IMG/VR virus record: IMGVR_UViG_3300032288_004964
Coordinates: 248,001 to 312,000 of that record
Length of the DNA: 64,000 nucleotides
Reading direction: 5' to 3' (one strand)
Shown here in pieces: positions 4,352 through 35,133 of this stretch. Numbering within the stretch: position 1 is the first letter of the stretch; the number at the start of each line of letters is the position of its first letter. The position numbers and the translations under genes are program-made. A model generated the notes under the pieces. It worked only from the letters and a program-made list of their open reading frames with translations, did no database searches and was not told the DNA's origin.

Positions 4352-4917
4352 TGAAAAAAGAAGAAATACTAAGTAGTAGAAAAAAATCAATTTATATTTA
4401 TAAAAACACATTTACTACAGGTATAGTAGATGGTCAGTTTATTTTAGATAGAGATTTATTTGATAAACATTGTAGAAAATATGACTTTATACATGGTGAC
4501 ATTAAATCTCCAAATATAATGGGTCAATATTTTTTATATGAGTCTTTAATAGATGGTAGGTTTAAGTCAAATATGTTACACGATCTTGAGTTACATTATC
4601 CAAAATTAGGAGTCTATTTAAACTCTCTTCCATGTGATCAAACAATTGAAGTTGAATGGGTTGATTACAGGAGAACTTGGGAATGGAATATTGAATATGA
4701 TTACAATTACCAGGAAAAGGTATATCAAAATTATATGGCTGAAATTCCAACCGAGATCCAAAGACTACCTCTTTGGTCTGACTCTTTATTAGTTTATGGT
4801 GTTTGGGATTCTAAACCAAATTGGAAACAACTAAAACAAGCTTATGAAAAAACTTGGTGGTTTCATAGAAGTGTAGAAGACCTGAGAGACCTACAATTAG
4901 AAAGATTATTAAAATGA
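4351..4917 (+). CDS. Hypothetical protein (C-terminal RDxxLxxLL motif)
   Basis: ORF track, coupled starts and stops. Confidence 0.7.
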   Translation: MKKEEILSSRKKSIYIYKNTFTTGIVDGQFILDRDLFDKHCRKYDFIHGDIKSPNIMGQYFLYESLIDGRFKSNMLHDLELHYPKLGVYLNSLPCDQTIEVEWVDYRRTWEWNIEYDYNYQEKVYQNYMAEIPTEIQRLPLWSDSLLVYGVWDSKPNWKQLKQAYEKTWWFHRSVEDLRDLQLERLLK

Positions 4918-5843: not shown

Positions 5844-6320
5844 TTAAGTTTTTATCAAATTAATTCTATTTCCACCAAAGTATTCTAATTTGTAACCAGG
5901 TATAGGATTTCTTTGTAAGTATCTTAAATAAACTTTTGTTCTTTGTGATATATATTCTTTTTCTTGTTCCTTTGGAAGACCAACCATTGTTATTTTTTTA
6001 ACCCAAGATTTTCTTTTTATAAAATCTTTTAATATACCACCAAATATAGTTTCTACCGTTCTATATAAATTAACATTTACAATTTTAGAAACTTCATAGT
6101 ATTCTTTTTCTGGATCATATACAAAATATGACAATTCATATTCTGTTCCTAAATTATTTGATTTAAGTATAGGTATATTTTTAAATTCAACTAGATACCA
6201 ATTATCAATAGTATCTTGAAATCTATATCTTACTTTTTTATCATTATCGGAAGCCAATTCCCAAGAATAAGATTCAACAGATTCTAATAATAAATCATAT
6301 ATAGAATTAATATATTTCAT
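5844..6320 (-). CDS. Hypothetical protein, putative late gene
   Basis: ORF track; TAATATATA motif immediately upstream. Confidence 0.7.
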   Translation of the reverse strand: MKYINSIYDLLLESVESYSWELASDNDKKVRYRFQDTIDNWYLVEFKNIPILKSNNLGTEYELSYFVYDPEKEYYEVSKIVNVNLYRTVETIFGGILKDFIKRKSWVKKITMVGLPKEQEKEYISQRTKVYLRYLQRNPIPGYKLEYFGGNRINLIKT

Positions 6321-6406
6321 AGTATTATATATTAAATTTGAAAATATTTAAATTATTTTTAAAAAATAACAAAACAAAGAATAAATATTTAATATATAGT
6401 ATATAT

Positions 6407-6502
6407 TGCGGGGTAGAGAAGTGGTCAACTCGCTAGGCTCATTTTAGACTATCTAATGAAGAAATAACCTAGAGATCACAGGTTCGAATCCTGTCCCCGC
6501 TA
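6407..6502 (+). tRNA. Initiator-type tRNA-Met(CAT) with 23-nt insertion in the anticodon loop
   Basis: TGCGGGG/CCCCGCT acceptor with 1:72 mismatch; CTAGG-CTCAT[23 nt]AA-CCTAG; GGTTCGAATCC. Confidence 0.8.
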
Positions 6503-6590
6503 CAAAAAGGAAGATTTGAAACCCAACAAAAAAAGATTATATAAACGGGGTTCTTTTGAAATTCATTTCTTCTGAAGAATTAAAAAAATA

Positions 6591-6623
6591 TTTGGTGATT
6601 AATAAAAATCACCTTATATTTGT
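6591..6623 (+). promoter_or_regulatory. Bacteroidota-type sigma promoter (-33 TTTG, -7 TATATTTG) driving leader 1 and tRNA cluster 1
   Basis: tttggtgattaataaaaatcaccttatatttgta. Confidence 0.75.
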
Positions 6624-6656
6624 AAAAGAAAATTAAAACATATTAAAAATTAAAAA

Positions 6657-6737
6657 ATGAACACAACTACTAACATATTGTCTTATTATTATGAGGAGAA
6701 AAACCCTTCTATCAGACAAGTATTGTTTGTGTTGTAA
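6657..6737 (+). CDS. Attenuator leader peptide 1 (Tyr/Glu sensor) MNTTTNILSYYYEEKNPSIRQVLFVL
   Basis: TAT TAT TAT GAG GAG run; followed by a terminator and Tyr/Glu tRNAs. Confidence 0.85.
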   Translation: MNTTTNILSYYYEEKNPSIRQVLFVL

Positions 6738-6758
6738 TTATTATTATAATATTAAATG

Positions 6759-6795
6759 AAACCCAGTCTGATTATCAGACTGGGTTTTTTGTTTT
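6759..6795 (+). terminator. Attenuator terminator 1
   Basis: aaacccagtctga-tta-tcagactgggttt plus U tract; ATCAGAC at 6711-6717 in the leader is complementary to the 5' arm. Confidence 0.85.
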
Positions 6796-6815
6796 ATATA
6801 TGTTCTTTGAAAATT

Positions 6816-6906
6816 GGGAGTATAACGTCAGCGGAATGTAAGCCGCCCCTCGTAAATATATGGCGTATGGCTTGAGGTAACTAGTGTTCGAATCCTGGTA
6901 CTCCCA
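6816..6906 (+). tRNA. Atypical tRNA-Tyr-like gene (irregular anticodon arm containing GTA)
   Basis: GGGAGTA/TACTCCC acceptor identical to tRNA-Tyr at 7660; TTCGAATCC T-loop. Confidence 0.5.
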
Positions 6907-6911
6907 CAAAT

Positions 6912-6983
6912 GGTCTTGTCGACTAATGGTTAGGTCAACACCCTTTCAAGGTGTAGATGCGGGTTCGATCCCCGTCAAGACTA
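6912..6983 (+). tRNA. tRNA-Glu(TTC)
   Basis: Cloverleaf; acacc-CTTTCAA-ggtgt. Confidence 0.9.
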
Positions 6984-6992
6984 CAAATAAAT

Positions 6993-7078
6993 GCTACGGT
7001 ATGCAAACCGGAATAAGCGACCAGACTTTCAATCTGGACATCGAAAGATGTGTGCGGGTTCGAGCCCCGTCCGTAGTA
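6993..7078 (+). tRNA. tRNA with TTC (Glu) anticodon and long variable arm
   Basis: ccaga-CTTTCAA-tctgg; acatc-gaaa-gatgt V-arm; A73. Confidence 0.8.
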
Positions 7079-7081
7079 CAA

Positions 7082-7223
7082 AAATATCAGGAGTACCTGT
7101 CGTAGAAAGTTAATCACTTTCCCTGATATTTATAAAACTCAATGAAGTAAGTGACTTTAGGTAGTACCGACAGGAGGGTGAATTTGATTAAGTTCTTTGG
7201 GGTTCGAATCCCACCATTGAGTT
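7082..7223 (+). ncRNA. Hairpin plus tRNA-like element (acceptor stem and T-arm) with potential mutual pairing
   Basis: actcaatg/cattgagt stem; GGTTCGAATCC; cctgtcg(7096)/cgacagg(7168) complementarity. Confidence 0.45.
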
Positions 7224-7228
7224 GTTTT

Positions 7229-7312
7229 GGGAATGCGCCAACGTTGGAGAGTTGGGCTAGTCTGTAAAACTAGTGGCTTATGCCTGAGTGAGTTCGATTC
7301 TCACCATTCCCA
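7229..7312 (+). tRNA. tRNA-Tyr(GTA)
   Basis: ctagt-CTGTAAA-actag; long V-arm. Confidence 0.85.
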
Positions 7313-7316
7313 CAAG

Positions 7317-7541
7317 ATGAAGATAATAGATTTTTTAATACAAGTAGGTACCTTCAAAAGTAAAGGTGAGGCAATTAGAGCTGTAAAAAACAAAATGACT
7401 TTGAAGATAAGAGGTACTGATGAAAGTAATGTTCAATATAAAGATATCATAATAGATGAAAGTAATATAAATGGTTATATCTATATTGAAAATGAAAAGG
7501 TTTATGTAACAAATTTTGATATAAAAGATTTGGTAGATTGA
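7317..7541 (+). CDS. Small S4-like RNA-binding-domain protein
   Basis: True start likely ATG 7317 after the tRNA; IIDFLIQVGTFKSKGEAIRAV resembles the S4 motif of the TyrRS C-terminus. Confidence 0.55.
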   Translation: MKIIDFLIQVGTFKSKGEAIRAVKNKMTLKIRGTDESNVQYKDIIIDESNINGYIYIENEKVYVTNFDIKDLVD

Positions 7542-7578
7542 ACTTTTTTATTTATCTTTGTAAAACAAATATAAAAAT

Positions 7579-7651
7579 GCACCGTTAGTGAAGCGGCTAA
7601 CACGTCTCCCTTTCACGGAGAAGATCATCGGTTCGAACCCGATACGGTGTA
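7579..7651 (+). tRNA. tRNA-Glu(TTC)
   Basis: tctcc-CTTTCAC-ggaga; own TTTG...TATCTTTG promoter at ~7529-7562. Confidence 0.9.
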
Positions 7652-7659
7652 CAAATTTT

Positions 7660-7739
7660 GGGAGTATCGCATAGCGGCAATTGCAGTAGACTGTAAATCT
7701 ACCCTTTCGAGTTCGAAGGTTCGAGTCCTTCTACTCCCA
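7660..7739 (+). tRNA. tRNA-Tyr(GTA)
   Basis: gtaga-CTGTAAA-tctac. Confidence 0.9.
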
Positions 7740-7743
7740 CAAA

Positions 7744-8373
7744 TTATATATCAGAGTCACTCCTAAGTAATCCACACTTTTGACACTCTTCAAATCCATC
7801 ACCATCTTTATCTCCCCAAATGTGTTCACAATTTCTGTGTTCAAAATATTCATCAATATCCCCATCACCATCAGTATCATATCCGTCATTAACACCATCA
7901 CCATCTTCATCAACTTCAACCTTTTCAAAAACAGGTTTTGACTCGACTGGAATATTAACTACTTCAGTTTTTCTTTTCATTGATGATGTATAGTCAGGCA
8001 TAACTGTTTCTTTCTTTGGTTCATCCGGAAACTCACCTGCTTTTGAAAGTGACATTCCATCCTCTTCATCAACTTTTTGAATTAACATTTTATCTCTATC
8101 TTCTGAATTAAATCAATAATCAATAACTTTATTTAAATTACCAACAAAAGCACCTAATAAAATTAATAACATTTCTTTCCAGTCCTCTCCAATTGATATT
8201 CCAAAAAATACCGCTGAATTAATACCAACAATTATAAGTATAAATATACCTAATACTATGGCGGTTATTCTCCATCTATTTGCCTGCATTTGCTGAAGCA
8301 TATAATAAAATCTATTTTTATCTTCAACTTTTATATAATCTGTTTTACTACTAAAGAATTTTCCCAATCCCAT
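7744..8373 (-). CDS. Two-TM membrane protein with acidic DxDGDG C-terminus, interrupted by an in-frame TGA at 8113-8115
   Basis: ORFs 8113..8373 and 7744..8088 share a frame and are joined by TGA-TTT-AAT-TCA-GAA-GAT-AGA-GAT-AAA. Confidence 0.6.
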
Positions 8374-8476
8374 AATTAATTTTTATTTTTATATATTAAT
8401 TTAAAAATAAAAAAAATAAAAAAATTATTAGGGGGAGTGAAACTTTTTATATATATTTGTATAAGAGATTAAAACT

Positions 8477-8560
8477 ATGAAAAATTTACATAACATATCA
8501 ATAGCGATTATAGCGGGCGGCGCGGGGAGCGACTGTCATTGGCTGAGTTATGTGTTGTAA
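8477..8560 (+). CDS. Attenuator leader peptide 2 (Ile/Ala/Gly sensor) MKNLHNISIAIIAGGAGSDCHWLSYVL
   Basis: ATA/GCG/GGC/GGG codon run; followed by a terminator and Ile/Gly/Ala tRNAs. Confidence 0.85.
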   Translation: MKNLHNISIAIIAGGAGSDCHWLSYVL

Positions 8561-8587
8561 ATAATAAATATATTTATAATAATATTG

Positions 8588-8618
8588 AAACCCAGTCACA
8601 AAATGACTGGGTTTTTTT
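8588..8618 (+). terminator. Attenuator terminator 2
   Basis: aaacccagtca-caaaa-tgactgggttt plus U tract; tggctgagtt (8540-8549) can pair with the 5' arm. Confidence 0.85.
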
Positions 8619-8627
8619 AATTTATAT

Positions 8628-8701
8628 AGGTGAGTAGCTTAGATGGTAAAAGCATGTGTCTTATACACACAAGATAGTGGGATCGTTACCCACCTCACCT
8701 A
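8628..8701 (+). tRNA. tRNA-Ile(TAT)
   Basis: tgtgt-CTTATAC-acaca; T-loop ATCGTTA. Confidence 0.85.
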
Positions 8702-8929
8702 CTGAAAAAAATAAAAATGAAAGGAAAAATGAAAAGTTGAAATTGAATTGTTGGTTTATTTATAGATGTGTTAATAGTAATATCTATTTTCACCGTGTTA
8801 AATAAGAATATTAAATGTCGTATTTATGAAAATGAATATGAGACATGGGTACCTGACTTAAACGGTAACATACAACGTAAAGAAACTAAAACAATTGTTA
8901 TTAACTTCTTAAGAAGATTAGGATAACAA

Positions 8930-9003
8930 GCAATAGTGGTGTTAATGGTTTAGCACATCTGACTTCCAATCAGAAGGTGTCGGTTCGAATCCGGTCTAAT
9001 GCA
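8930..9003 (+). tRNA. tRNA-Gly(TCC)
   Basis: tctga-CTTCCAA-tcaga. Confidence 0.85.
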
Positions 9004-9050
9004 CAAAGTGAGAAAACACTTAAAAACCATCCCACCAGGATGTAAAAATC

Positions 9051-9133
9051 GCGGGTGTAGTATAGTGGAGGCGAAAGCCGTATTATATCGGTCTTCCAAA
9101 CCGAAGATGTGAGTTCGATTCTCATCACCCGCT
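9051..9133 (+). tRNA. tRNA-Gly(TCC) with D-loop hairpin insertion
   Basis: tcggt-CTTCCAA-accga; ggc-gaaa-gcc in the D-loop. Confidence 0.85.
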
Positions 9134-9146
9134 CAAATAATGTAAT

Positions 9147-9222
9147 GGGGTTACATGTACCAAGGCTTAGGCGAGACTGCTTTGCAAGCAATCTGTGGTG
9201 GGTTCGATTCCCACTAGCTCCA
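9147..9222 (+). tRNA. tRNA-Ala(TGC)
   Basis: TTTGCAA loop; G3.U70 pair; atypical D arm. Confidence 0.75.
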
Positions 9223-9234
9223 CAAAAAAAACAA

Positions 9235-9307
9235 GCGAAAGTAGCTCAGTTGGTAGAGCGTAACCTTGCCAAGGTTAAGGTCGCGGGTTCGAGACCCGTC
9301 TTTCTCT
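9235..9307 (+). tRNA. tRNA-Gly(GCC)
   Basis: taacc-TTGCCAA-ggtta. Confidence 0.85.
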
Positions 9308-9308
9308 C

Positions 9309-9452
9309 AAGATAGTAGCAATGTAAGAGTGTTACTTCGTATTTCAAACGACTAGTTCAGGTTCGAATCCTGGGTTCCGCTCAAAATAATATAAGCGGAA
9401 TTAGTGTAACGGCAGCACAGTAAAAACACACTCAGCAAATTTTCTCTATCTT
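9309..9452 (+). ncRNA. YrlA/Y-RNA-like permuted tRNA mimic
   Basis: Long closing stem (agatag/ctatct, gagtgt/acactc, ttact/agtaa) enclosing T-arm, loop-closed acceptor stem, then D-arm. Confidence 0.6.
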
Positions 9453-9456
9453 ATTA

Positions 9457-9529
9457 GGGCCAGATGCCAACGGCAGGTCAACTCGCTTGCACCGAGATTG
9501 TTTGGGTTCGATTCCCACTGTGTCCACCA
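9457..9529 (+). tRNA. Atypical tRNA-Ala(TGC), encoded CCA
   Basis: ctcg-CTTGCAC-cgag; G3.U70; bulged acceptor stem. Confidence 0.65.
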
Positions 9530-9559
9530 ATGTATTTGGACAAGAACCTAAATTAAAAT

Positions 9560-9590
9560 AAAAAAAGCCTCATTTGATGAGGCTTTTTTT
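9560..9590. terminator. Bidirectional intrinsic terminator
   Basis: aaaaaaagcctcat-ttg-atgaggcttttttt between convergent units. Confidence 0.8.
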
Positions 9591-9592
9591 AT

Positions 9593-11056
9593 TTAAGATA
9601 TTTTAATTTTCATTTTTGTTCCGGTGTCTATTTTATCACAGGATAAATCAAATTTGTGTTCTTTTAATATGGCAAAACAGATATTTAGTCCAAGCCCGGA
9701 TTCACTTTCTTTCTCTACTGAATAAGAAGATAATATTTTATCAAATTTATTTTGAGTCAATCCTATACCATTGTCTTCAATAATTAAATATTCATTCTCC
9801 ATGTATATTTTAACTTTTTTACTTTCGCTTTTATTATATTTTAAACCATTTTTTATTAGATTATCAATAGCGTTCCAGAAAAGTGTCTCATTTACTATAG
9901 CATTTGGTAAATCTTCGACTTCTACTTGTGTAGAATATGATGTTGTGAGAATACATCTATTTAATAAATCTTTTAAATTTACATCAGTTTTATCTAACAC
10001 TACATTTTGTTTAACAAGATTGGTAAACTCATATACCGACTTATAAACTTTTTGAGTATGATTAAGTCCTTCTTTAATCATTTTAACTGGTCCATCAATT
10101 TTTAATTTTTGTAATTCTTCTGGAGTAACTCTTTTCTCTAAAGAGTTTATACCTCGAGGAATATAAGTATTTATACCAGAGTGCATATCATGTCTAATAA
10201 TTCTAGCGGCATGTTCTAAATAAGTATTCTTTTTATTAATATCTCTTAGTTGTTTTTCAATTTCTTTATCTTGTACTTTAATTGTTTTTCTTTGTAAAAG
10301 AGCAAGTATAGAAAGCCCCATAATTGAAGCACATATAATTGCCCATATTAAATAAGTTCTTAATTTTGATTTTTGAACTTCTAAATCTTTATTTTCTACT
10401 TGTAACTCTCCTTTAACAACAGTAAGATCTATTATGTCTTTTTCTTTAGATAATGTTTTAATTGTACCTGTCTTAGAATCTATTACTTGTTGATTAGCAT
10501 TAGCCTTTTGTAGTGAATCTTTTTCAAATATTAATTTTTTAATTTTGTTATCAATTTCTTCAGCTACCTTTTTTAAGTCTTCTTTTGATAAATTATCATA
10601 AGATTGTGGAAGATTTTTAATAAAATTTTGGTCATTCTTAACTTGATTAGCTTCATTTTCATCTAATTCTGCAGGAGTAGGTGCGGGTACCATTATCTCT
10701 TTGATAAGATAAATATACTCTTTAGAAGCAGATATTTGTGATTCAATAGGACGTATTTTTGAGTTAATAGACTTGTTGAACCACCAATTAGCTCCCTCAA
10801 ATTCTTTTCTCGAATAAAGAGCCAATCCTATTTCTAAACTAATTGATTTTTCTTCAGGTGATAATTCCGAATTTTCGCTATCTCTGATTTTATAGATATC
10901 AATTTTATCCATAAGATTATTAATGTAATTATCATCTGGGCAAATAGGAACTCCTTGGTCCCAAACAGATTCAACACTTTCTGTTGTATCTATCTTAGTT
11001 TGTGAATAAGAGGCCAAACAGATAAGGCTAAATAATATTAAGAAATATTTTTTCAT
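9593..11056 (-). CDS. Membrane sensor histidine kinase
   Basis: Signal peptide, TM helix, H-box RHDMHSG, N-box NLIKNGLKY, G1 DNGIG, G2 GLGL. Confidence 0.85.
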   Translation of the reverse strand: MKKYFLILFSLICLASYSQTKIDTTESVESVWDQGVPICPDDNYINNLMDKIDIYKIRDSENSELSPEEKSISLEIGLALYSRKEFEGANWWFNKSINSKIRPIESQISASKEYIYLIKEIMVPAPTPAELDENEANQVKNDQNFIKNLPQSYDNLSKEDLKKVAEEIDNKIKKLIFEKDSLQKANANQQVIDSKTGTIKTLSKEKDIIDLTVVKGELQVENKDLEVQKSKLRTYLIWAIICASIMGLSILALLQRKTIKVQDKEIEKQLRDINKKNTYLEHAARIIRHDMHSGINTYIPRGINSLEKRVTPEELQKLKIDGPVKMIKEGLNHTQKVYKSVYEFTNLVKQNVVLDKTDVNLKDLLNRCILTTSYSTQVEVEDLPNAIVNETLFWNAIDNLIKNGLKYNKSESKKVKIYMENEYLIIEDNGIGLTQNKFDKILSSYSVEKESESGLGLNICFAILKEHKFDLSCDKIDTGTKMKIKIS

Positions 11057-11729: not shown

Positions 11730-12317
11730 ATGATTAAAATTTTAGGTAAAATCCCAAAAGGTGAGTTTGGTTTAGCATGTTCCGGTGGAGTTGATTCTAT
11801 GGCTATTCTTGATTTCCTTATTACCGGGAATCATATTCCACATATTTTATACTTTAATCACAATACAAAACATGGTGATGATGCTGAAAAGTTTATTACT
11901 GATTATTGTAAAGAAAAAAATCTTAAATTAACAATCGGTAGAACATATCTTAAACCAACTTCAAATAAGGAAAAGATTTGGAGTAATGCTCGTTATGAAT
12001 TCTTTTCAAAATTTGATTTTCCTATCATGACTTGTCACCACTTAGATGATTGTGTAGAAACATATATCTTCTCTTGTCTGAGAGGATTTCAATCTGTTAT
12101 CCCATACTCTAAAGGTAATGTGATTAGACCGTTCTTATTGAATGAAAAATCGGTATTTACTAAATGGTGCATTGATAAGGAAGTTCCATTTATTCAAGAT
12201 GATTCAAATGATTGCTTAGACTATTCAAGAAATAGAATTAGACATCAAATTGTACCTGAGTCTTTATTAGTGAACCCAGGATTGAAAACAGTTGTTAAGA
12301 AAATGGTATCAAAATAA
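11730..12317 (+). CDS. tilS: tRNA(Ile)-lysidine synthetase (short form)
   Basis: PP-loop SGGVDS, HHLDD, IRPFL, DDSN...SRNRIRH motifs. Confidence 0.85.
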   Translation: MIKILGKIPKGEFGLACSGGVDSMAILDFLITGNHIPHILYFNHNTKHGDDAEKFITDYCKEKNLKLTIGRTYLKPTSNKEKIWSNARYEFFSKFDFPIMTCHHLDDCVETYIFSCLRGFQSVIPYSKGNVIRPFLLNEKSVFTKWCIDKEVPFIQDDSNDCLDYSRNRIRHQIVPESLLVNPGLKTVVKKMVSK

Positions 12318-13552: not shown

Positions 13553-13800
13553 GTGATAAAATTTGTTATATTTGTTTAAGTGATGATATCTATTATGATG
13601 TTGATGAACCACTTATTTGCGATATGTGTGATGAGTATTACTGTTATGAATGTTCATATACCTACTCAATTCATTATCAACATGAAGGATCAAGATGTTA
13701 TCAATGTGCTGACCAGAGTAGGAGAAAACCTTTAAACAGAAGAGACTATAAAATAGATTACATTTTAAGAAATGAAAAAATTAAAAATATTTTAAAATAA
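13549..13800 (+). CDS. Cys-rich zinc-finger-like protein
   Basis: Four CxxC pairs. Confidence 0.65.
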   Translation: MSDKICYICLSDDIYYDVDEPLICDMCDEYYCYECSYTYSIHYQHEGSRCYQCADQSRRKPLNRRDYKIDYILRNEKIKNILK

Positions 13801-13890
13801 ATTAGGCAGATATAAAACTTTTATCTATATTTGTATAAAATAATGACAAAATAAACAAAAGGGACAAAAACTTTTTAATATATATACACA

Positions 13891-14001
13891 ATGACAACAA
13901 TTAATTTAAATATGAACATGAATACACTGACAGTGGTGAATAATACGTTATGTATTAGACCTTGTGAGGGTTTTGATCTATTTAAAGGATTTGTCAATTA
14001 A
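13891..14001 (+). CDS. Attenuator leader peptide 3 MTTINLNMNMNTLTVVNNTLCIRPCEGFDLFKGFVN
   Basis: First 23 codons use only M,T,I,N,L,V,C,R, the amino acids of the downstream tRNA cluster. Confidence 0.85.
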   Translation: MTTINLNMNMNTLTVVNNTLCIRPCEGFDLFKGFVN

Positions 14002-14029
14002 TGTAACAAATTTTTAATAAAAGATACTC

Positions 14030-14062
14030 AAAACCCTCAGTCAAAAACTGAGGGTTTTTTTA
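14030..14062 (+). terminator. Attenuator terminator 3
   Basis: aaaaccctcagt-caaaa-actgagggtttt; perfect 12-bp antiterminator tgagggttttga(13965)/tcaaaaccctca(14028). Confidence 0.9.
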
Positions 14063-14075
14063 TTATAAGAAATTT

Positions 14076-14148
14076 GGACTGGAAGCTAGTATGGTACAGC
14101 TGCGGCCTGTTAAGCCGAGGATAGTGGGATCGTTACCCACCCAGTCCG
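14076..14148 (+). tRNA. tRNA-Asn(GTT)
   Basis: cggc-CTGTTAA-gccg; T-loop ATCGTTA. Confidence 0.8.
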
Positions 14149-14164
14149 CAAAAAGAAATAAAAA

Positions 14165-14243
14165 CGGTGCGTACCGAGCCACACTGATAATGTGGATATT
14201 CGTAATGGTGTTGCAAATGTAGGTTCAAATCCTATCGTACCGA
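14165..14243 (+). tRNA. D-armless tRNA-like gene with GAT (Ile) anticodon and long variable region
   Basis: cggtgcg/cgtaccg; ccaca-CTGATAA-tgtgg; GGTTCAAATCC. Confidence 0.55.
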
Positions 14244-14249
14244 CAAAAT

Positions 14250-14322
14250 GGTTCCTTCGTTCAACTGGACAGGACATCGGTCTTCTAAACCGAGGATATG
14301 GGTTCGAATCCCGTAGGGACTA
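14250..14322 (+). tRNA. tRNA-Arg(TCT)
   Basis: tcggt-CTTCTAA-accga. Confidence 0.9.
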
Positions 14323-14384
14323 CTGAGAGAGACCGTTTATAGTTTTTAACAGGACACAAGAGTGGAAGCGTAGAAAACTAAAAT

Positions 14385-14468
14385 GCCGGAGTGGCGAAAT
14401 GGTTAATACGCGCTAGCCTTAGAAGCTAGTGTCTATATGACGTGTGGGTTCGAGTCCCACCTCCGGTA
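14385..14468 (+). tRNA. tRNA-Leu(TAG)
   Basis: ctagc-CTTAGAA-gctag; long V-arm. Confidence 0.9.
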
Positions 14469-14500
14469 CTGAAGTGAAACTAAAGTTCACTACTAAAAAT

Positions 14501-14586
14501 TACTGTGTTGCCGTAGTGGCCGAACGGTCCAGACTGTTAATCTGGTGACGAATAGTCCAACGTAGGTTCGAATCCTACCACAGTAG
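14501..14586 (+). tRNA. tRNA-Asn(GTT) with long variable arm
   Basis: ccaga-CTGTTAA-tctgg; G73. Confidence 0.8.
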
Positions 14587-14591
14587 CAAAA

Positions 14592-14664
14592 GCCCCCGTA
14601 GCTTAATCGGGAAAGCACTTGTTTTACATACAAGATAGAGTCGGATCGTAACCGGCCGGGGGTA
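14592..14664 (+). tRNA. tRNA-Val(TAC)
   Basis: cttgt-TTTACAT-acaag; T-loop ATCGTAA. Confidence 0.85.
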
Positions 14665-14671
14665 CAAATAT

Positions 14672-14744
14672 TGTCAGTTAGCTCATTTGGTAGAGCACTT
14701 GTCTGATACACAAGAGGTGGTGGGATCGTAACCCGCACTGACAA
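14672..14744 (+). tRNA. tRNA-Ile(GAT)
   Basis: cttgt-CTGATAC-acaag; T-loop ATCGTAA. Confidence 0.85.
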
Positions 14745-14750
14745 CAAAAT

Positions 14751-14833
14751 GGTACTGTGGCCGAGCGGTGTCGAAAGACGAGAGGCAGTAGTCTGCAAAA
14801 CTACTCACACTGGTTCGAATCCAGTCAGTACCT
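14751..14833 (+). tRNA. tRNA-Cys(GCA) with D-loop hairpin insertion
   Basis: gtagt-CTGCAAA-actac; U73; gtc-gaaa-gac in the D-loop. Confidence 0.85.
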
Positions 14834-14845
14834 CAAAAAGAGTTC

Positions 14846-14917
14846 GCTCTCTAAGCATTAATGGTGATGCGCTAGTCTTGTAAACTAGATAAATCGGATC
14901 GTTACCGGTAGAGAGCT
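14846..14917 (+). tRNA. tRNA-Thr(TGT)
   Basis: ctagt-CTTGTAA-actag; T-loop ATCGTTA. Confidence 0.85.
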
Positions 14918-14922
14918 CAAAT

Positions 14923-15068
14923 CGGTAGGACCCTATATTCTGTGGTAACTTCTAGAGAAGCCACAAGATGAATCGGTCTGGGTTAAAAACCAAACTTGGT
15001 TATTTGATATTCTAGAAATCATCATTTAATTAAGATTGGGAAGGTAGGTTCGAATCCTACCCTACTGT
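14923..15068 (+). ncRNA. 146-nt tRNA-like RNA (acceptor stem and T-arm enclosing a multi-hairpin core)
   Basis: cggtagg/cctactg; gtagg-TTCGAAT-cctac; no recognisable anticodon arm. Confidence 0.5.
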
Positions 15069-15075
15069 CAAATAT

Positions 15076-15147
15076 TGTTCTGTAGCTCAATGGGAGAGCA
15101 CTTCCTTGACATGGAAGAGGTAGTCGGATCGTTACCGACCAGAACAA
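15076..15147 (+). tRNA. tRNA-Val(GAC)
   Basis: cttcc-TTGACAT-ggaag; T-loop ATCGTTA. Confidence 0.85.
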
Positions 15148-15148
15148 C

Positions 15149-15267
15149 TTAATGGATGGTGATTGAAAGAGTTACTTCGTTTAATGGAAAAACAATTGAC
15201 TTCTAATCAGTGCACGGTGGTTCGATTCCACCAGTATAAAACCTCTTTCTACCTTTTCCTCCATTAA
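15149..15267 (+). ncRNA. Y-RNA-like element carrying D, anticodon (TCT, Arg) and T arms on a long closing stem
   Basis: ttaatgga/tccattaa and gaaagag/ctctttc stems; shares GTTACTTCG...AGTA(T)AAAAC with the 9309 element. Confidence 0.55.
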
Positions 15268-15269
15268 AT

Positions 15270-15349
15270 GCTGATGTGGCACAGTGGCGACTGCACCAAC
15301 CTTGTAAGTTGGAACACAAACATCGGGGGTTCGAGTCCCTCCATCAGCT
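15270..15349 (+). tRNA. tRNA-Thr(TGT) with extended variable region
   Basis: ccaac-CTTGTAA-gttgg. Confidence 0.8.
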
Positions 15350-15356
15350 CAAAAAT

Positions 15357-15443
15357 GCTTCTGTGGCGAAATTGGCAGCACGCGAGGGACTTAAAATCCC
15401 TTGGACCGGAAAGTCCGTATCGGTTCGAGTCCGATCAGAAGTA
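15357..15443 (+). tRNA. tRNA-Leu(TAA)
   Basis: aggga-CTTAAAA-tccct. Confidence 0.9.
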
Positions 15444-15449
15444 CTAAAA

Positions 15450-15521
15450 TGCGATATAGCTTAATGGAAGAGCGGCTCCAGACATAGGGAGTTAGTCTTG
15501 GTTCGATTCCAGGTATCGCGA
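15450..15521 (+). tRNA. tRNA-Met-like with 8-nt anticodon loop (AGA-CAT-AG)
   Basis: gctcc-AGACATAG-ggagt; normal D and T arms. Confidence 0.6.
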
Positions 15522-15526
15522 CAAAT

Positions 15527-15596
15527 GGCGTGGCTTAGTGGAAAAGAGCAGTCTCTCATAAGGACTGATAAGTGGGTTCGAACCCCATACACGCTA
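15527..15596 (+). tRNA. Atypical tRNA with CAT anticodon (Met or Ile2)
   Basis: agtct-CTCATAA-ggact; short acceptor/D connector. Confidence 0.6.
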
Positions 15597-16247
15597 CTAA
15601 TTAATTTTATTAGGATATCCTAACTTAGCCTTATTAACTATGTTTATATGTTCAACATTTTTTGGGAATAATCTTGGATGATAATTATCATATTGGTCTA
15701 AAAACTTAAAATCTTCTTTTTTAAGTTTCATTCCATCAAATCTATTTAAGAAGTTTATAAATGATTGTAAAGATTCATCTACTAAACCAAATACAGTATT
15801 ACTTCTATCAAAATTAGAACCATAAGAAGTATATTGAATTACTTTTATTTTATTCGGTTCTTCAATACTAAATTCACAGGTCATGGCATCACCATATGTT
15901 ATATCAATAGTTAATGTTATATTACCATCTTTGTCATCTTTAGCAAAATAAATATCAAATTCTAAAGTATCGGGTGTTCCCCATATCTCTCCTGATTCTT
16001 TACTACCAAGTGGTGTAGAAGCATAAGTTATCTGAACCATGTCAGAGTGTAACATTATATTATCTTTCTTAAATTTATAAAGATTATTGTGATAATTTAT
16101 TGTAATGAATTCTGATAGTTCGTTTTCCCATCTCTTATCATAGATAGTATTTAAAGTATTAGTCTTACTATCTATATTAGGTTTTATATTACCATTAGCT
16201 TTAATTGTAGCTTCAATATCTTCATTAAATCTTCTTAAATATTTCAT
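15597..16247 (-). CDS. Hypothetical protein, paralog of 22092..22820
   Basis: Shared PDxLxFDI...IDxTYGDxMxxEFxIxxPNK motif; MKYLRRFNE start. Confidence 0.75.
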   Translation of the reverse strand: MKYLRRFNEDIEATIKANGNIKPNIDSKTNTLNTIYDKRWENELSEFITINYHNNLYKFKKDNIMLHSDMVQITYASTPLGSKESGEIWGTPDTLEFDIYFAKDDKDGNITLTIDITYGDAMTCEFSIEEPNKIKVIQYTSYGSNFDRSNTVFGLVDESLQSFINFLNRFDGMKLKKEDFKFLDQYDNYHPRLFPKNVEHINIVNKAKLGYPNKIN

Positions 16248-16464: not shown

Positions 16465-17922
16465 ATGAAAAATATTGTAACAAGAATTGCTCCTTCTCCA
16501 ACTGGTAAGTTTGTCCATTTAGGAAACTTAAGAACTTTACTTTATAATTACTTCCTTGCTAAAAGACACGGTGGTAAATTCCTTGTGCGTTTAGAAGATA
16601 CTGACCGTGACCGTTATACTCCAGAATTTCTACAATATTTTAAAGATACTTGTGATTGGTTAGGAATTGTACCTGATAATTCTTTTTGGAATCCAGATCC
16701 ATCAATTGGTTCATTTATTCAATCAGAAAGAGATTATTCTGACAAAGTTAAATTTCTATTAGATAATGGATTGGCTTATTATGCTTTTGATACAAAAGAT
16801 GATTTAGATATTTTAAAGTCTAAAGGTCTTAAATATGATGCAACCACTCGTATGTCTATGAATAACTCATTGACAAGACCTGATACTGATATTAATTCTG
16901 TTCCTTATGTTATTCGTTTTGCTGTTACACCAGATGTAGATATTACTTTTACAGATGCAATCTTAGGTGATATTACTATTAACACAAATACTTTAGATGA
17001 TAAGGTTTTAATTAAATCCAATGGTATTGGTTCTTATCATCTTTGTAATGTTTGTGATGATCATGATATGAAAGTTACTCATGTTCTTCGTGGACAAGAA
17101 TGGGTAAATTCTACTCCTTTTCATATTCTTATGTATAAAGCATTTGGTTGGGATATTCCTACTTTTGCTCACTTACCTCTAATTATGAATCCTGATGGTA
17201 AAGGTAAACTAGCAAAAAGAACGGCTGCTAAATATGGTATTCCTATTGCGCCACTTGGTTATACTGATGATAATGGAGTCTATATCCCAGGTTGGAAAGA
17301 TTTAGGTTATGATCCTAAGGCATTTATCAATTCACTTGCTTTAATTGGTTGGAATCCTGGTAATGATGTTGAAGTTATGTCCTTAGATGATATGATTAAT
17401 TCATTTTCATTAGACAGAGTTCATAAATCAGGTGCTCGTTTTGATATTGATAAAGCAAAATGGATTAACTCACACTATTTAAAGGCTACTGATAATAAAG
17501 ATTTAATTCCTTTTGTTAATATTGTGGATAATAGATATTCTAATGATAAATTAGATAAGATTATTACTTTAGCAAAAGATAGAGCTACTTTTAAGACAGA
17601 CTTAAATAATATTGTTGATTTGTTTTTTGATACACCTGTTATTACAGACTATTCAAAAATTGATGATAACTATATAAAAGTAATGTCTAGTTTTGTTGAT
17701 AATATTGACTCTGTTGATTTCAATGATACTGATAGTATTAAATTAACAATTTCTTCTATCTGTGATGGGTTTGGAATTAAGATTGGTAAAGTAATGCCTG
17801 GTTTGAGAATTGCTTTAGTTGGTGGAATAAGTGGACCAGATTTAATGACCACGATGTCAATTCTTGGTAAAGACCAAGTAAAATTGAGAATTCTTAACTC
17901 TACAAAAACAGTTACTGTATAA
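16465..17922 (+). CDS. gltX: Glutamyl-tRNA synthetase
   Basis: RIAPSPTG, HLGN (HIGH), RLEDTD, DDHDM-VTHVLRG, KLAKR. Confidence 0.92.
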   Translation: MKNIVTRIAPSPTGKFVHLGNLRTLLYNYFLAKRHGGKFLVRLEDTDRDRYTPEFLQYFKDTCDWLGIVPDNSFWNPDPSIGSFIQSERDYSDKVKFLLDNGLAYYAFDTKDDLDILKSKGLKYDATTRMSMNNSLTRPDTDINSVPYVIRFAVTPDVDITFTDAILGDITINTNTLDDKVLIKSNGIGSYHLCNVCDDHDMKVTHVLRGQEWVNSTPFHILMYKAFGWDIPTFAHLPLIMNPDGKGKLAKRTAAKYGIPIAPLGYTDDNGVYIPGWKDLGYDPKAFINSLALIGWNPGNDVEVMSLDDMINSFSLDRVHKSGARFDIDKAKWINSHYLKATDNKDLIPFVNIVDNRYSNDKLDKIITLAKDRATFKTDLNNIVDLFFDTPVITDYSKIDDNYIKVMSSFVDNIDSVDFNDTDSIKLTISSICDGFGIKIGKVMPGLRIALVGGISGPDLMTTMSILGKDQVKLRILNSTKTVTV

Positions 17923-22820: not shown

Positions 22821-22987
22821 AAAATCTACCTTATATTTGTGAAACAATTGGGATGGGAAACGATTCAGATACAAGTCTCAATTTTTTTTTACAAAAATAA
22901 TTTGGCAGATATAAAACTTTTTTCTATATTTGTATAAAATAAGAACAAATAACAAAAAGAGAGAATAACTTTATAATATATACTGAA

Positions 22988-23086
22988 ATGAAAAACTTAA
23001 ACTTAAATATCGTTAACCCGCAACCTCAAGTTGTAATCGATCAGGATCCTGATACGATAGGGGCTAACTATGTGGTTTTAAGTTAA
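22988..23086 (+). CDS. Attenuator leader peptide 4 (Pro/Gln/Asp sensor) MKNLNLNIVNPQPQVVIDQDPDTIGANYVVLS
   Basis: PQPQ..DQDPD run; followed by a terminator and Asp/Pro/Gln tRNAs. Confidence 0.85.
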   Translation: MKNLNLNIVNPQPQVVIDQDPDTIGANYVVLS

Positions 23087-23110
23087 AGAATAATATTAAC
23101 TATGAAACGT

Positions 23111-23150
23111 AACCCAGTTAGTCGAAAGATTAACTGGGTTTTTTGTTTTT
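23111..23150 (+). terminator. Attenuator terminator 4
   Basis: aacccagttagtc-gaaa-gattaactgggtt plus U tract; ggctaact (23062-23069) pairs with agttagtc. Confidence 0.85.
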
Positions 23151-23585: not shown

Positions 23586-23639
23586 ATGAGAACAACAACA
23601 CAATACCAACAACAACAACAAATTAATCCAACAGATTGA
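23586..23639 (+). CDS. Attenuator leader peptide 5 (Gln sensor) MRTTTQYQQQQQINPTD
   Basis: Six CAA codons; followed by a terminator, two tRNA-Gln and glnS. Confidence 0.9.
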   Translation: MRTTTQYQQQQQINPTD

Positions 23640-23667
23640 TAATGGTATCGTATTGTTTAAACTTTAC

Positions 23668-23702
23668 AAACCCTACTCAATCTGATTGAGTAGGGTTTTT
23701 TT
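23668..23702 (+). terminator. Attenuator terminator 5
   Basis: aaaccctactcaat-ctg-attgagtagggttt plus U tract; cagattga(23632)/tcaatctg(23677) antiterminator. Confidence 0.9.
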
Positions 23703-33610: not shown

Positions 33611-33695
33611 GAGGAAGTTCCAGAGTGGTCAAATGGGGCTGTGTAGTAACACGGCTGACTTTTAGTCTTCAGAGGTTCAAATCCTTTCTTTCTCA
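33611..33695 (+). tRNA. tRNA-Tyr-like with 8-nt anticodon loop
   Basis: gctgt-GTAGTAAC-acggc; long V-arm; A73. Confidence 0.6.
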
Positions 33696-33785
33696 CAAAA
33701 AATATTTTGAAAAACATTTGGTAGAATAAAAAAAAGTTTCTATCTTTGTAAAACAAAATTAAAAGGTATTATATAAAAAACATAT

Positions 33786-33861
33786 TGCGGGAGGGTGAAA
33801 CGGAAAATCATTCCAGGCTCATAACCTGACGAGATACTTGGTTCGACTCCAAGTCCCGCTA
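33786..33861 (+). tRNA. Initiator-type tRNA-Met(CAT)
   Basis: cagg-CTCATAA-cctg; 1:72 mismatch. Confidence 0.75.
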
Positions 33862-33895
33862 CTAAAAAAAGTTTTTATAAATTTTTTACAAAAGA

Positions 33896-33976
33896 TTTGG
33901 ATAATTAAAAAAAAGTTTCTATCTTTGTAAAACAAAATTAAAAACAAAACTATAAAAATAGTTCTTTAACATATTG
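33896..33976 (+). promoter_or_regulatory. Host-type promoter followed by a boxA-like element
   Basis: tttggataatt...tatctttgta, then gttctttaacatattg; the promoter is nearly duplicated at ~33717. Confidence 0.65.
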
Positions 33977-33979
33977 AAA

Positions 33980-34840
33980 TTACAGAAATAATGACTTCGG
34001 TCATTAAAGTAAGTAGGGCGGCTTATAGTCCATAAATAATCTCTGAAAGGAGGATAAAGTGATCACAAATGCTAAATGTGATTGCGGCTTGACCGAAAGG
34101 TTGAGCTCGGGTAAGCGAGTGGAATACCATTATTCCTGAGTAGCCGAGGGTAACACTGTAGGCGAAATGGTTTAGTGATTAGGCGATGTAGATCGTCTGA
34201 TTGACTTCGGAAGAAGAATAGGAATAATCCATAGGAATCTTTGCAAGAAGTGGTGACCCACCAGTTATCATCATTGCGAATTCCAACTTGAGAGGTATCT
34301 CAAAGTCGAAAGACAATTTAGTGTACAGGTGGTGCTGTTACTAAACACTAAACTGACTACCAAGTCGGTGACCTTGCTAAGGTGAGGTCTGGTGAAGATA
34401 TCTTAAAGAGTTGTGATGGAGGCATCACACGGAGTAGTCTAGTATTCTTGAGGCCAAAAGCTTTGGGAACTAAGAGATAACCACTACTTCGACAAAATCT
34501 ACAGCACTAAAATTTACTTTTTGACGTAAAAATTAAAACTTAAATCGAAAGTGTTATCTAGTTACTGATAGAAAGGTACCTACTTAGTTATGGGTTGTCC
34601 ATAGCCACATAAGTCCGAAAGACTGGTGTGATTTTACCGAAAAGCTTATAGGGGGTCGAATCCCGAACTAGCCTGCGAGGGTTGGATAAGTAGAGTAAGT
34701 AGAGAGTATTCAGTGACTCAAGGGGTGGTTAGTCTAACTAACCGGTACTGACAAGATACCATTCAAAAGATGGTGGATAGATTTGGGAATACATAATCCA
34801 AACAAAGACTTGTCATATTAAGATGTAATCTCAGTCTTTT
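33980..34840 (+). ncRNA. Large structured ncRNA, GOLLD-like
   Basis: ~850 nt with no ORF in the track, higher GC than flanks, many GNRA/UUCG-capped hairpins, flanked by tRNAs; family name is from size and context only. Confidence 0.6.
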
Positions 34841-34844
34841 ATTT

Positions 34845-34920
34845 GGTCAGTTCGTCTAGCGGCATTCAGGACGGATATCTATTCAGATATCAAACATTGG
34901 TTCGAATCCAATACTGACTA
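34845..34920 (+). tRNA. tRNA-Glu-like with 8-nt anticodon loop
   Basis: gatat-CTATTCAG-atatc; normal D and T arms. Confidence 0.6.
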
Positions 34921-34999
34921 CTAAGTTTTCGTAGTGGTTAACTTACTCCGAAAGGGGGGTCTGTCAATGACAGTGTGACTACCTCAAAGTCACACATAT

Positions 35000-35099
35000 G
35001 GCCCGTTAGTCTACAGGACTCGCAAGAGAATCAGATTTATCTGATTAGGACGGTCAACTTTTCGGTTGATAGATATTGGTTCGAATCCAATACGGGCTA
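35000..35099 (+). tRNA. tRNA-Glu-like with 8-nt anticodon loop and two hairpins in the D-loop
   Basis: gtcaa-CTTTTCGG-ttgat; nested in a 10-bp stem 34925/35124. Confidence 0.55.
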
Positions 35100-35133
35100 C
35101 AGAAATCACGGTCTTTTGACCGTCTACGAAAAC

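Follow-up and report, generated by a model that had tools for sequence, protein, structure and literature searches.

The leaders of the ilv and thr operons sense two to three amino acids and control biosynthetic enzymes, while attenuation of pheST yields the synthetase protein for one amino acid. In Bacteroidetes, the presumed host phylum of the phage considered here, the Bacteroid-trp leader motif suggests that leader-peptide attenuation is used as well. Phage tRNA clusters such as those of T4, T5, KVP40 and the mycobacteriophages are thought to supplement the host pool, and we know of no leader open reading frame (ORF) and terminator in front of any of these arrays. We have analysed a 64,000-nucleotide stretch of the IMG/VR virus record IMGVR_UViG_3300032288_004964 (hereafter the window), in which a short leader ORF and an intrinsic terminator, together termed L3, precede a tRNA array of 16 members. 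Sequence comparison and RNA modelling make it probable that a ribosome-mediated (leader-peptide) transcription attenuator controls this phage tRNA operon. The components of the locus are as follows:

13802-13833, + strand: Bacteroidota-type promoter-like site (TTAG/TTTG ... TAnnTTTG), located by motif scan
13891-14001, + strand: L3 leader ORF of 36 codons plus TAA, by translation
13894-13959, + strand: L3 sensing stretch, codons 2-23 (Thr x5, Asn x6, Leu x3, Met x2, Val x2, Ile x2, Cys x1, Arg x1)
13965-13976, + strand: antiterminator 5′ strand (region 2), tgagggttttga, inside the ORF at codons 25-29 and an exact 12-nt complement of 14028-14039
14028-14039, + strand: antiterminator 3′ strand (region 3), overlapping the terminator 5′ arm
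14030-14061, + strand: L3 intrinsic terminator, with a 12-bp stem (14030-14041/14047-14058), a 5-nt loop, a run of seven T (14055-14061) and a ΔG of about -16 kcal/mol
14076-15599, + strand: tRNA array of 16 members, from ARAGORN and Rfam tRNA matches

L3 shares with the ilvGMEDA, ilvBN and thr leaders a set of leader codons for several amino acids, a choice between terminator and antiterminator, a stall position that would decide between the two, and predicted induction by any one shortage. It differs from the ilv and thr leaders in its eight amino-acid types, in controlling tRNA genes, in its location in a phage and in having no clear 1:2 hairpin. The opposition of a 2:3 antiterminator to a 3:4 terminator follows the logic of E. 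coli trpL; unlike in trpL, the L3 ORF reaches the apex of the antiterminator, the untranslated leader is predicted to read through, and the regulated genes are of another kind. As in the pheST leader (pheM) and other attenuators of aminoacyl-tRNA synthetase (aaRS) genes, a component of translation would be regulated by stalling on cognate codons, but the output of L3 is the tRNAs themselves, and many at once. The regulated genes are not the amino-acid biosynthesis, transport or aaRS genes typical of known attenuators, a departure that concerns a trait of the known examples and not of the mechanism. The mechanism class is textbook; what is new is the tRNA target, the feedback logic, the eight-class breadth and the setting in a phage and in Bacteroidota. 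Leader-peptide attenuation before tRNA genes is unreported for phages or bacteria in the literature that we searched, in which coverage of subscription journals was incomplete. Neither a genome-wide attenuator survey (PMC2965389) nor the description of the huge phages (PMC7162821) contains such attenuation before tRNA genes.

The original prediction, made from the letters of the window, held that the first 23 codons of L3 are restricted to Met, Thr, Ile, Asn, Leu, Val, Cys and Arg, and this is borne out by the translation of 13891-14001. Under strict wobble rules the tRNAs of the L3 array decode 22/22 sensing codons, and 9 of the 10 distinct anticodons of the array are represented among these codons, Val-GAC being the sole exception. 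The eight amino acids account for 42.4% of residues in the 44 long ORFs of the window, a frequency at which 22 consecutive residues from the set have a chance probability of P = 6e-9. The longest such run in the long ORFs (14,037 amino acids) is 9, and among 616 short ATG ORFs in the six frames of the window the L3 leader alone begins with a run of at least 15. A chance origin of the codon match is excluded. Some codons of the stretch are very rare among their synonyms (CTG, 1% of Leu codons; GTG, 5% of Val; ACG, 2% of Thr), and when the sensing codons of all five leaders found in the window are taken together, G or C occupies the third position in 33% of them vs 15% in genes (P = 4e-4), with G/C-ending rare codons enriched. 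Classical leader peptides are likewise enriched in rare codons. The prediction had further described a multivalent OR gate broader than the ilv and thr leaders. The breadth stands, with eight amino-acid types and nine anticodon species, but the gate is unequal: Asn (six codons) and Thr (five) dominate, the weight lies on Asn, Thr, Leu, Val, Met and Ile, and Cys and Arg are marginal.

The 32-nt promoter motif, TT[TA]G-N-TAnnTTTG, which we take to be the Bacteroidota promoter type after the consensus of Bacteroides and Flavobacterium promoter studies, occurs about 15 times in the window, always 5′ of genes or leaders. The L3 leader ORF starts 58 nt 3′ of the motif at 13802-13833, and this dedicated promoter lies about 220 nt 5′ of the terminator. 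A scan of 13834-15599 (+ strand) returned no promoter motif, either in the gap between terminator and tRNAs or inside the array, and an internal promoter that would bypass the terminator was rejected on that ground. A perfect 12-bp antiterminator following the sensing stretch had been predicted too, and both direct reading and folding confirm that 13965-13976 is the exact reverse complement of 14028-14039. When folded, it forms part of a long hairpin (13958-14042) with a total ΔG of -33 kcal/mol before the terminator 3′ arm exists, and antiterminator and terminator are mutually exclusive. The ORF continues for 25 nt after region 2 and ends at the apex of the antiterminator hairpin, and a further hairpin (13930-13964) adjoins region 2 without covering it. 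From the end of the ORF to the terminator 5′ arm the distance is 28 nt (14001 vs 14030), and 20-28 nt across the five leaders, for which reason coupling of the pyrBI type, where a ribosome masks the terminator, was rejected. The first tRNA follows 14 nt after the T run.

The geometry of stalling was modelled with a ribosome mask, in which RNA up to 11-16 nt beyond the A-site is made unavailable and the readout is how much of the terminator 5′ arm is sequestered while its 3′ arm has yet to be transcribed. With the ribosome stalled on L3 at positions up to codon 19-21, sequestration is 0.8-0.98; stalls at codons 22 and 23 give 0.27-0.75 and 0.03-0.50, respectively, and from codon 24 onward the value is at most 0.19 (0.01-0.19 at codon 24). 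In this model the antiterminating stall window of L3 ends where the matching codons end.

We propose that transcription would start at the promoter at 13802-13833 and that a ribosome would read the 36-codon leader behind the polymerase. With ample charged tRNAs for Asn, Thr, Leu, Met, Val, Ile, Cys and Arg, the ribosome would pass codon ~23 and melt the 5′ half of the antiterminator hairpin (region 2, 13965-13976), leaving region 3 free to pair with 14047-14058 as the terminator, and transcription would end in the T run, 14 nt short of the first tRNA. With any cognate tRNA scarce, the ribosome would dwell within codons 2 to ~22 and region 2 would stay free to pair with newly made region 3; no terminator would then form and the 16-member array would be transcribed. 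Since the array would deliver the same tRNAs that the leader needs, the result would be a negative (homeostatic) feedback on tRNA supply.

The layout of promoter, short ORF, antiterminator and terminator (the latter of -16 to -20 kcal/mol) and promoterless tRNAs occurs four more times in the window:

6657-6790, + strand: L1, with ORF 6657-6737 (YYYEE) and terminator 6758-6790, followed by Glu, Glu and Tyr tRNAs
8477-8618, + strand: L2, with ORF 8477-8560 (ISIAIIAGGAG, with three ATA codons) and terminator 8587-8618, followed by Ile-TAT, Gly, Gly, Ala and Gly
22988-23144, + strand: L4a, with ORF 22988-23086 (PQPQVVIDQDPD) and terminator 23111-23144, followed by Asp, Asp, Pro and Ser, and then by L4b with Gln, Gln
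23586-23702, + strand: L4b, with ORF 23586-23639 (QYQQQQQ) and terminator 23668-23702, followed by Gln, Gln

Among the arrays of the window, 5/5 sensing codons of L1 are decodable by its own array only; in L2, 9/11 are decodable by its own array, and L4a has the weakest leader-array match of the five. Six of the seven codons of L4b are Gln, including a run of five, and this leader has no promoter of its own and lies inside a tRNA transcript, with a 1:2 hairpin present and its stop codon within region 2. As L4b is nested behind L4a, the Gln tRNAs would need read-through of two attenuators, and Gln codons are present in both leaders. The sister circuits would operate as proposed for L3, with Glu/Tyr, Ile(ATA)/Gly/Ala, Asp/Pro/Ser(+Gln) and Gln as their respective signals. 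A permutation of leaders against tRNA sets, suggested together with the original prediction, placed the true pairing at rank 1/120 at both the amino-acid and the codon level. The window holds 12 terminators on the + strand, and the five that directly precede promoterless genes are exactly those of the five leaders; the motif scan of the window never placed a promoter motif between a leader terminator and its tRNAs. The promoter and 5′ untranslated region (UTR) of L3 (13802-13890) and L4a (22901-22987) are near-identical, while the sensing codons and terminator stems differ, which suggests paralogous cassettes that arose by duplication followed by retuning of the codons.

The same design is found in the cultured Cellulophaga phage phi4:1 (NC_021788; host Cellulophaga baltica), where a region of 23 tRNAs is split by three units of promoter, short ORF and terminator:

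P1: run QRLHLQELEQP, followed by exactly Pro, Glu, Gln, His, Leu-TAG, Leu-TAA and Arg-ACG
P2, 3598-3717, annotated gp075: TKTGITVIDKTKGARA, followed by Ala, Lys, Ile, Gly, Met, Asp, Thr, Val, Arg and Met
P3: NYCTYNNSNWSFSY, followed by Tyr, Ser, Asn (type II), Trp and Phe

All codons of the P1 run are decodable (11/11) and all of its tRNAs are represented (7/7), the Arg codon CGT fitting the anticodon ACG, and the true pairing of the three leaders with their arrays ranks 1/6. This is an independent recurrence of the attenuator design. Phage phi17:2, considered as a second Cellulophaga case, is 98.9% identical to phi4:1 and was rejected as not independent. As a negative control, a T5-like coliphage region with 28 tRNAs gave zero terminators with the same detector. 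The ORF gp075 (‘hypothetical protein’) lacks an ATG where the paralogous cassette has one, and GTG at 3634 is its likely start.

Stall modelling of the sisters resembles that of L3. Sequestration falls from one codon past Glu-14 in L1 (0.24 by codon 16), past Gly-17 in L2 (0.10 by codon 19), across codons 21-22 in L4a (0.07 past Asp-22) and more gradually past Gln-12 in L4b (0.13 by codon 16), so that the collapse comes 1-2 codons past the last matching codon in the four sister leaders as well as in P1 and P2 of phi4:1. The boundary sits on the last matching codon in P1 and P2 and is less clean in P3. In L1, L2, L4a and L4b, 13-16 nt lie between the first base of the last matching codon and the start of region 2, and no leader ORF of the window extends past the apex of its antiterminator hairpin, each stopping there or just short of it. 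P values for hand-chosen stretches depend on the choice of stretch and are descriptive only; a sensing window was accordingly also taken from RNA structure alone, as the 10 codons before the boundary, with no stretch picked by eye. In these windows, matches number 10/10 for L3 and 9/10, 6/10, 5/10 and 4/10 for the other leaders of the window, and 10/10 and 10/10 in phi4:1. The Fisher combined probability is P = 4e-21, with P3 of phi4:1, whose minimum-energy fold took another partner, entered as P = 1.

The window, with ~27% GC, belongs to an AT-rich phage, and its nearest GenBank relatives are ‘huge phages’ of 634-735 kb (LR756502, LR745206, LR756504 and LR756501), whose replication in Bacteroidetes was predicted by their authors (PMC7162821). 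Leaders of the L3 type are present in seven relatives, namely LR756502, LR745206 and five IMG/VR contigs; the glutamyl-tRNA synthetases (GluRS) beside the leaders of the IMG/VR relatives range from 94% down to 48% amino-acid identity. The sensing part of these leaders carries several substitutions and insertions of 1-2 codons but keeps the eight-letter alphabet, with the exception of Lys at codon 2 in two of them, and indels in the first ~25 codons are multiples of 3 only. The 3′ third of the ORF drifts in amino-acid sequence and has a 1-nt deletion in LR756502. Such a contrast between an alphabet-keeping, frame-keeping 5′ part and a drifting 3′ part is the expected outcome where nothing counts but the identity of the early codons. 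Behind these leaders, the arrays, of up to 19 tRNAs, hold the same eight amino-acid classes only, and these contigs also carry homologs of the Glu/Tyr, Gly/Ala, Asp/Pro/Gln and Gln leaders. In the alignment of the L3 antiterminator, 90.6% of cells are paired and 4/12 pairs have changed on both sides (two positions, for instance, went from U-A to C-G); values as high came up in only 3-10 of 500 shuffles, and pairing in slid registers was 58% at most. The alignment comprises eight sequences, or about four independent lineages, and points to an antiterminator conserved with covariation that is real but modest. L4b is conserved in three relatives (L003, L017 and L018), and its covariation is uninformative, region 2 and its partner being invariant in the four homologs. 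Relatives reached through the GluRS neighbourhood (L006-L016, LR756504 and LR756501) have GluRS without adjacent arrays and were also uninformative. In LR756502 (L001), an ORF of ~67 codons lies at 4559-4760, between the L3-type terminator and the tRNA array, and the attenuator there would consequently control a protein gene together with the tRNAs.

An attenuator whose codons mirror its tRNA array, the core of the original prediction, is thus supported by the promoter, the exclusive structures, the stall geometry, the sister leaders, the conservation in relatives and the recurrence in phi4:1. A number of points weigh against it. The evidence is wholly in silico, and we infer leader translation, transcription-translation coupling in the host, an antiterminator that prevails kinetically, and how strongly and in which direction the circuit responds. 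At equilibrium the four leaders other than L3 are predicted to favour the terminator (~0.95) in almost every state, and antitermination must therefore be kinetic; equilibrium folding was dropped as the sole criterion and the co-transcriptional state before the 3′ arm was used. Without a ribosome the model gives read-through of 0.57-0.94, and of the five leaders L4b alone has a clear anti-antiterminator (region 1:2), with a plausible one in L4a, which makes the default state unlike that of the trp paradigm. A ribosome parked on the L3 stop codon (13999) does not physically cover region 2; termination in that state would hinge on timing and on the inner stems of the -33 kcal/mol hairpin having been disrupted. 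Cys and Arg are each represented by one codon (Cys-21, Arg-23), placed at the edge of the useful stall window, where a stall is only partly effective, and 4/16 members of the L3 array are non-canonical, one of them without an assigned identity. The covariation comes from only about four independent lineages, and the host, which we infer to be a Bacteroidota, is assigned indirectly.

Other readings of the locus have to be weighed against tRNA-sensing attenuation. The same attenuator might respond to amino-acid starvation through uncharged tRNA, as the original prediction had worded it, and the leader ORF is indeed blind to the difference between too little tRNA and tRNA that is not charged, so that the structural evidence fits both equally. 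Starvation would also trigger the switch. As the signal for which the circuit exists it is nevertheless unlikely: extra tRNA cannot relieve an amino-acid shortage and the loop would not close, the match extends to isoacceptors (ATA with Ile(TAT) in L2, CGT with Arg(ACG) in P1 of phi4:1, AGA with Arg(TCT) in L3), and the neighbouring GluRS and TilS-like PP-loop enzyme are tRNA-supply functions. As the leader would sense the availability of charged tRNA at the ribosome and its output is tRNA genes, tRNA supply is the logical controlled variable, and likely the actual one, in place of amino-acid supply. There might also be no regulation at all, the ORF being a chance or untranslated one and a leaky constitutive terminator, or the end of an upstream operon, setting the tRNA dose. 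The L3 terminator does also lie 3′ of an operon ending at 13800, and the model reads through without translation of the leader, which is itself only predicted. Given the codon match (P = 6e-9) and its repetition in five window and three phi4:1 leaders with pairing ranks of 1/120 and 1/6, the dedicated promoter, the frame-preserving conservation and the antiterminator covariation, we regard such an absence of regulation as very improbable.

Both the output and the presumed ligand are tRNAs, and the architecture resembles that of T-boxes, in which the state of a specific tRNA is sensed and an antiterminator/terminator switch precedes translation-related genes. A leader RNA could on this analogy sense tRNA without a ribosome, anticodons pairing with the codon-like stretch and stabilizing the antiterminator. 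T-boxes, however, bind uncharged tRNA via a specifier loop and the T-box sequence, whereas here an ORF would be read by a ribosome, and to our knowledge they do not put eight specificities on one unstructured stretch of 66 nt. No T-box was matched at E ≤ 1 in 13800-15700 or 6300-9600, and on none of the leaders did an Rfam leader family such as Thr_leader, His_leader, Leu_leader or Trp_leader, a riboswitch or another cis-regulatory family reach its gathering threshold; sub-threshold matches fell on the terminator only, as with Phe_leader on L3 (24.8 bits vs a threshold of 55, covering the terminator only). Start, frame and stop are conserved, indels of 3n are confined to the sensing part, and the placement of the sensing codons with respect to region 2 agrees with a ribosome footprint, all of which leaves direct binding of tRNA extremely improbable. 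Just as hard to credit is a functional peptide, either a small hydrophobic protein or an arrest peptide of the TnaC/SecM type, whose sequence and not its codons would matter. Codons 12-23 are unusually conserved among relatives in both nucleotide and peptide sequence, as a functional peptide would have it; yet the five leaders of the window have no common peptide motif and each mirrors its own array, and the homologs keep the alphabet, not the sequence, with a frameshift in the C-terminal third in LR756502.

The L3 array runs, in its first half, Asn-GTT, an Ile-like element (14165-14243), Arg-TCT, Leu-TAG, Asn-GTT (type II), Val-TAC, Ile-GAT and Cys-GCA, and in its second half Thr-TGT, a tRNA-like element (14919-15075), Val-GAC, an Arg-TCT core, Thr-TGT, Leu-TAA, a CAT tRNA with an 8-nt loop and Met-CAT. 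ARAGORN identified 12 of these (Asn, Arg, Leu, Asn, Val, Ile, Thr, Val, Thr, Leu, the CAT tRNA with the 8-nt loop and Met), and Rfam added three, namely Cys-GCA at 14751-14833 with a D-loop insert, the Arg-TCT core at 15173-15236 and the tRNA at 14165-14243, best read as Ile. The 157-nt element at 14919-15075 is read by relaxed ARAGORN as Leu-TAA with a 62-nt insert, which is not a confident assignment. The claim that the anticodons of the array all come from the set of eight amino acids holds for every assignable anticodon, but the added ‘nothing else’ cannot be upheld for this element. The Asn tRNA at 14501-14587 carries the anticodon GTT on a type II body with a long variable arm, as does that of phi4:1 at 6006-6094, and it is 85% identical to a ‘tRNA-OTHER/pseudo’ of phi4:1. 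As Asn codons are abundant in both the L3 leader and the P3 leader of phi4:1, this type of tRNA is suggested to be functional.

Further unusual tRNA genes were seen in the window. Six tRNA-like elements (14919-15075, 15149-15269, 14165-14243, 14751-14833, 6815-6907 and 7090-7225) have good acceptor and T arms together with large insertions, a missing or expanded D arm, or an extra flanking stem of ~20 bp, and are overlooked by standard tRNA finders. ARAGORN assigns 8-nt anticodon loops to 15450-15522, 33611-33696 and 34845-34921 (with four-base ‘anticodons’ acat, agta and attc), which could be unusual decoders, tRNAs of the frameshift type, or mis-modelled loops. In its intron mode the program finds a tRNA-Met(CAT) at 6407-6503 with a 23-nt insertion 3′ of the anticodon, and a tRNA-Gln(CTG) at 35000-35100 with a 14-nt insertion. 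At 9316-9450, a T arm and a 3′ acceptor strand are followed at once by a complementary 5′ acceptor strand and a D-arm-like segment, and this element may represent a tRNA gene that is split or circularly permuted. In a fifth cluster (33611-35100) the tRNAs have promoters of their own and no leader ORFs; within it lies a GOLLD RNA (Rfam RF02032, 270 bits, E = 7e-76) at 34430-34837 (+ strand), and the 470 nt 5′ of it (33960-34430), which have a structured look, may be the variable 5′ half of GOLLD. Three protein-coding genes close to the arrays have a bearing on tRNAs:

11730-12317: PP-loop ATPase, TilS/lysidine-synthase-like (E = 5e-28), flanking the L3 array
16465-17922: full GluRS, flanking the L3 array
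7317-7538, + strand: ORF of 74 amino acids directly 3′ of tRNA-Tyr, weakly resembling the C-terminal S4-like domain of tyrosyl-tRNA synthetase (E = 0.006, short of the Pfam threshold)

Besides the TilS-like enzyme, the phage encodes a tRNA-Ile(TAT) and several tRNAs with the anticodon CAT.

The purpose of phage tRNAs has long been debated, with compensation for codon usage, substitution for degraded host tRNAs and evasion of anticodon nucleases among the proposals. On balance we favour the view that phages of Bacteroidota carry unrecognised, codon-matched leader-peptide attenuators, which split their tRNA arrays into separately controlled groups, each switched on only when the matching decoders run short. 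If this is true, the shortage could arise where the codon demand of an AT-rich phage exceeds host supply, or where host tRNAs are degraded or cleaved by defence nucleases. It would also be the first ribosome-mediated attenuation of non-coding RNA genes, with a codon-by-codon readout of tRNA sufficiency, and would carry leader-peptide attenuation beyond the amino-acid operons and the few synthetases for which it is known, into tRNA genes, phages and Bacteroidota. The cassettes appear modular, L3 and L4a combining the same promoter and 5′ UTR with different sensing codons. Short ORFs of this kind are missed in annotation or called ‘hypothetical protein’, as with gp075 of phi4:1; the presence of the design in the cultured pair of Cellulophaga baltica and phi4:1 makes it directly testable, and fusions of leaders to reporters would give a handle on tRNA shortage during infection. 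A phage so equipped would gauge tRNA sufficiency in real time, and the grouping of codons in its leaders would reveal which tRNAs it treats as co-limiting.

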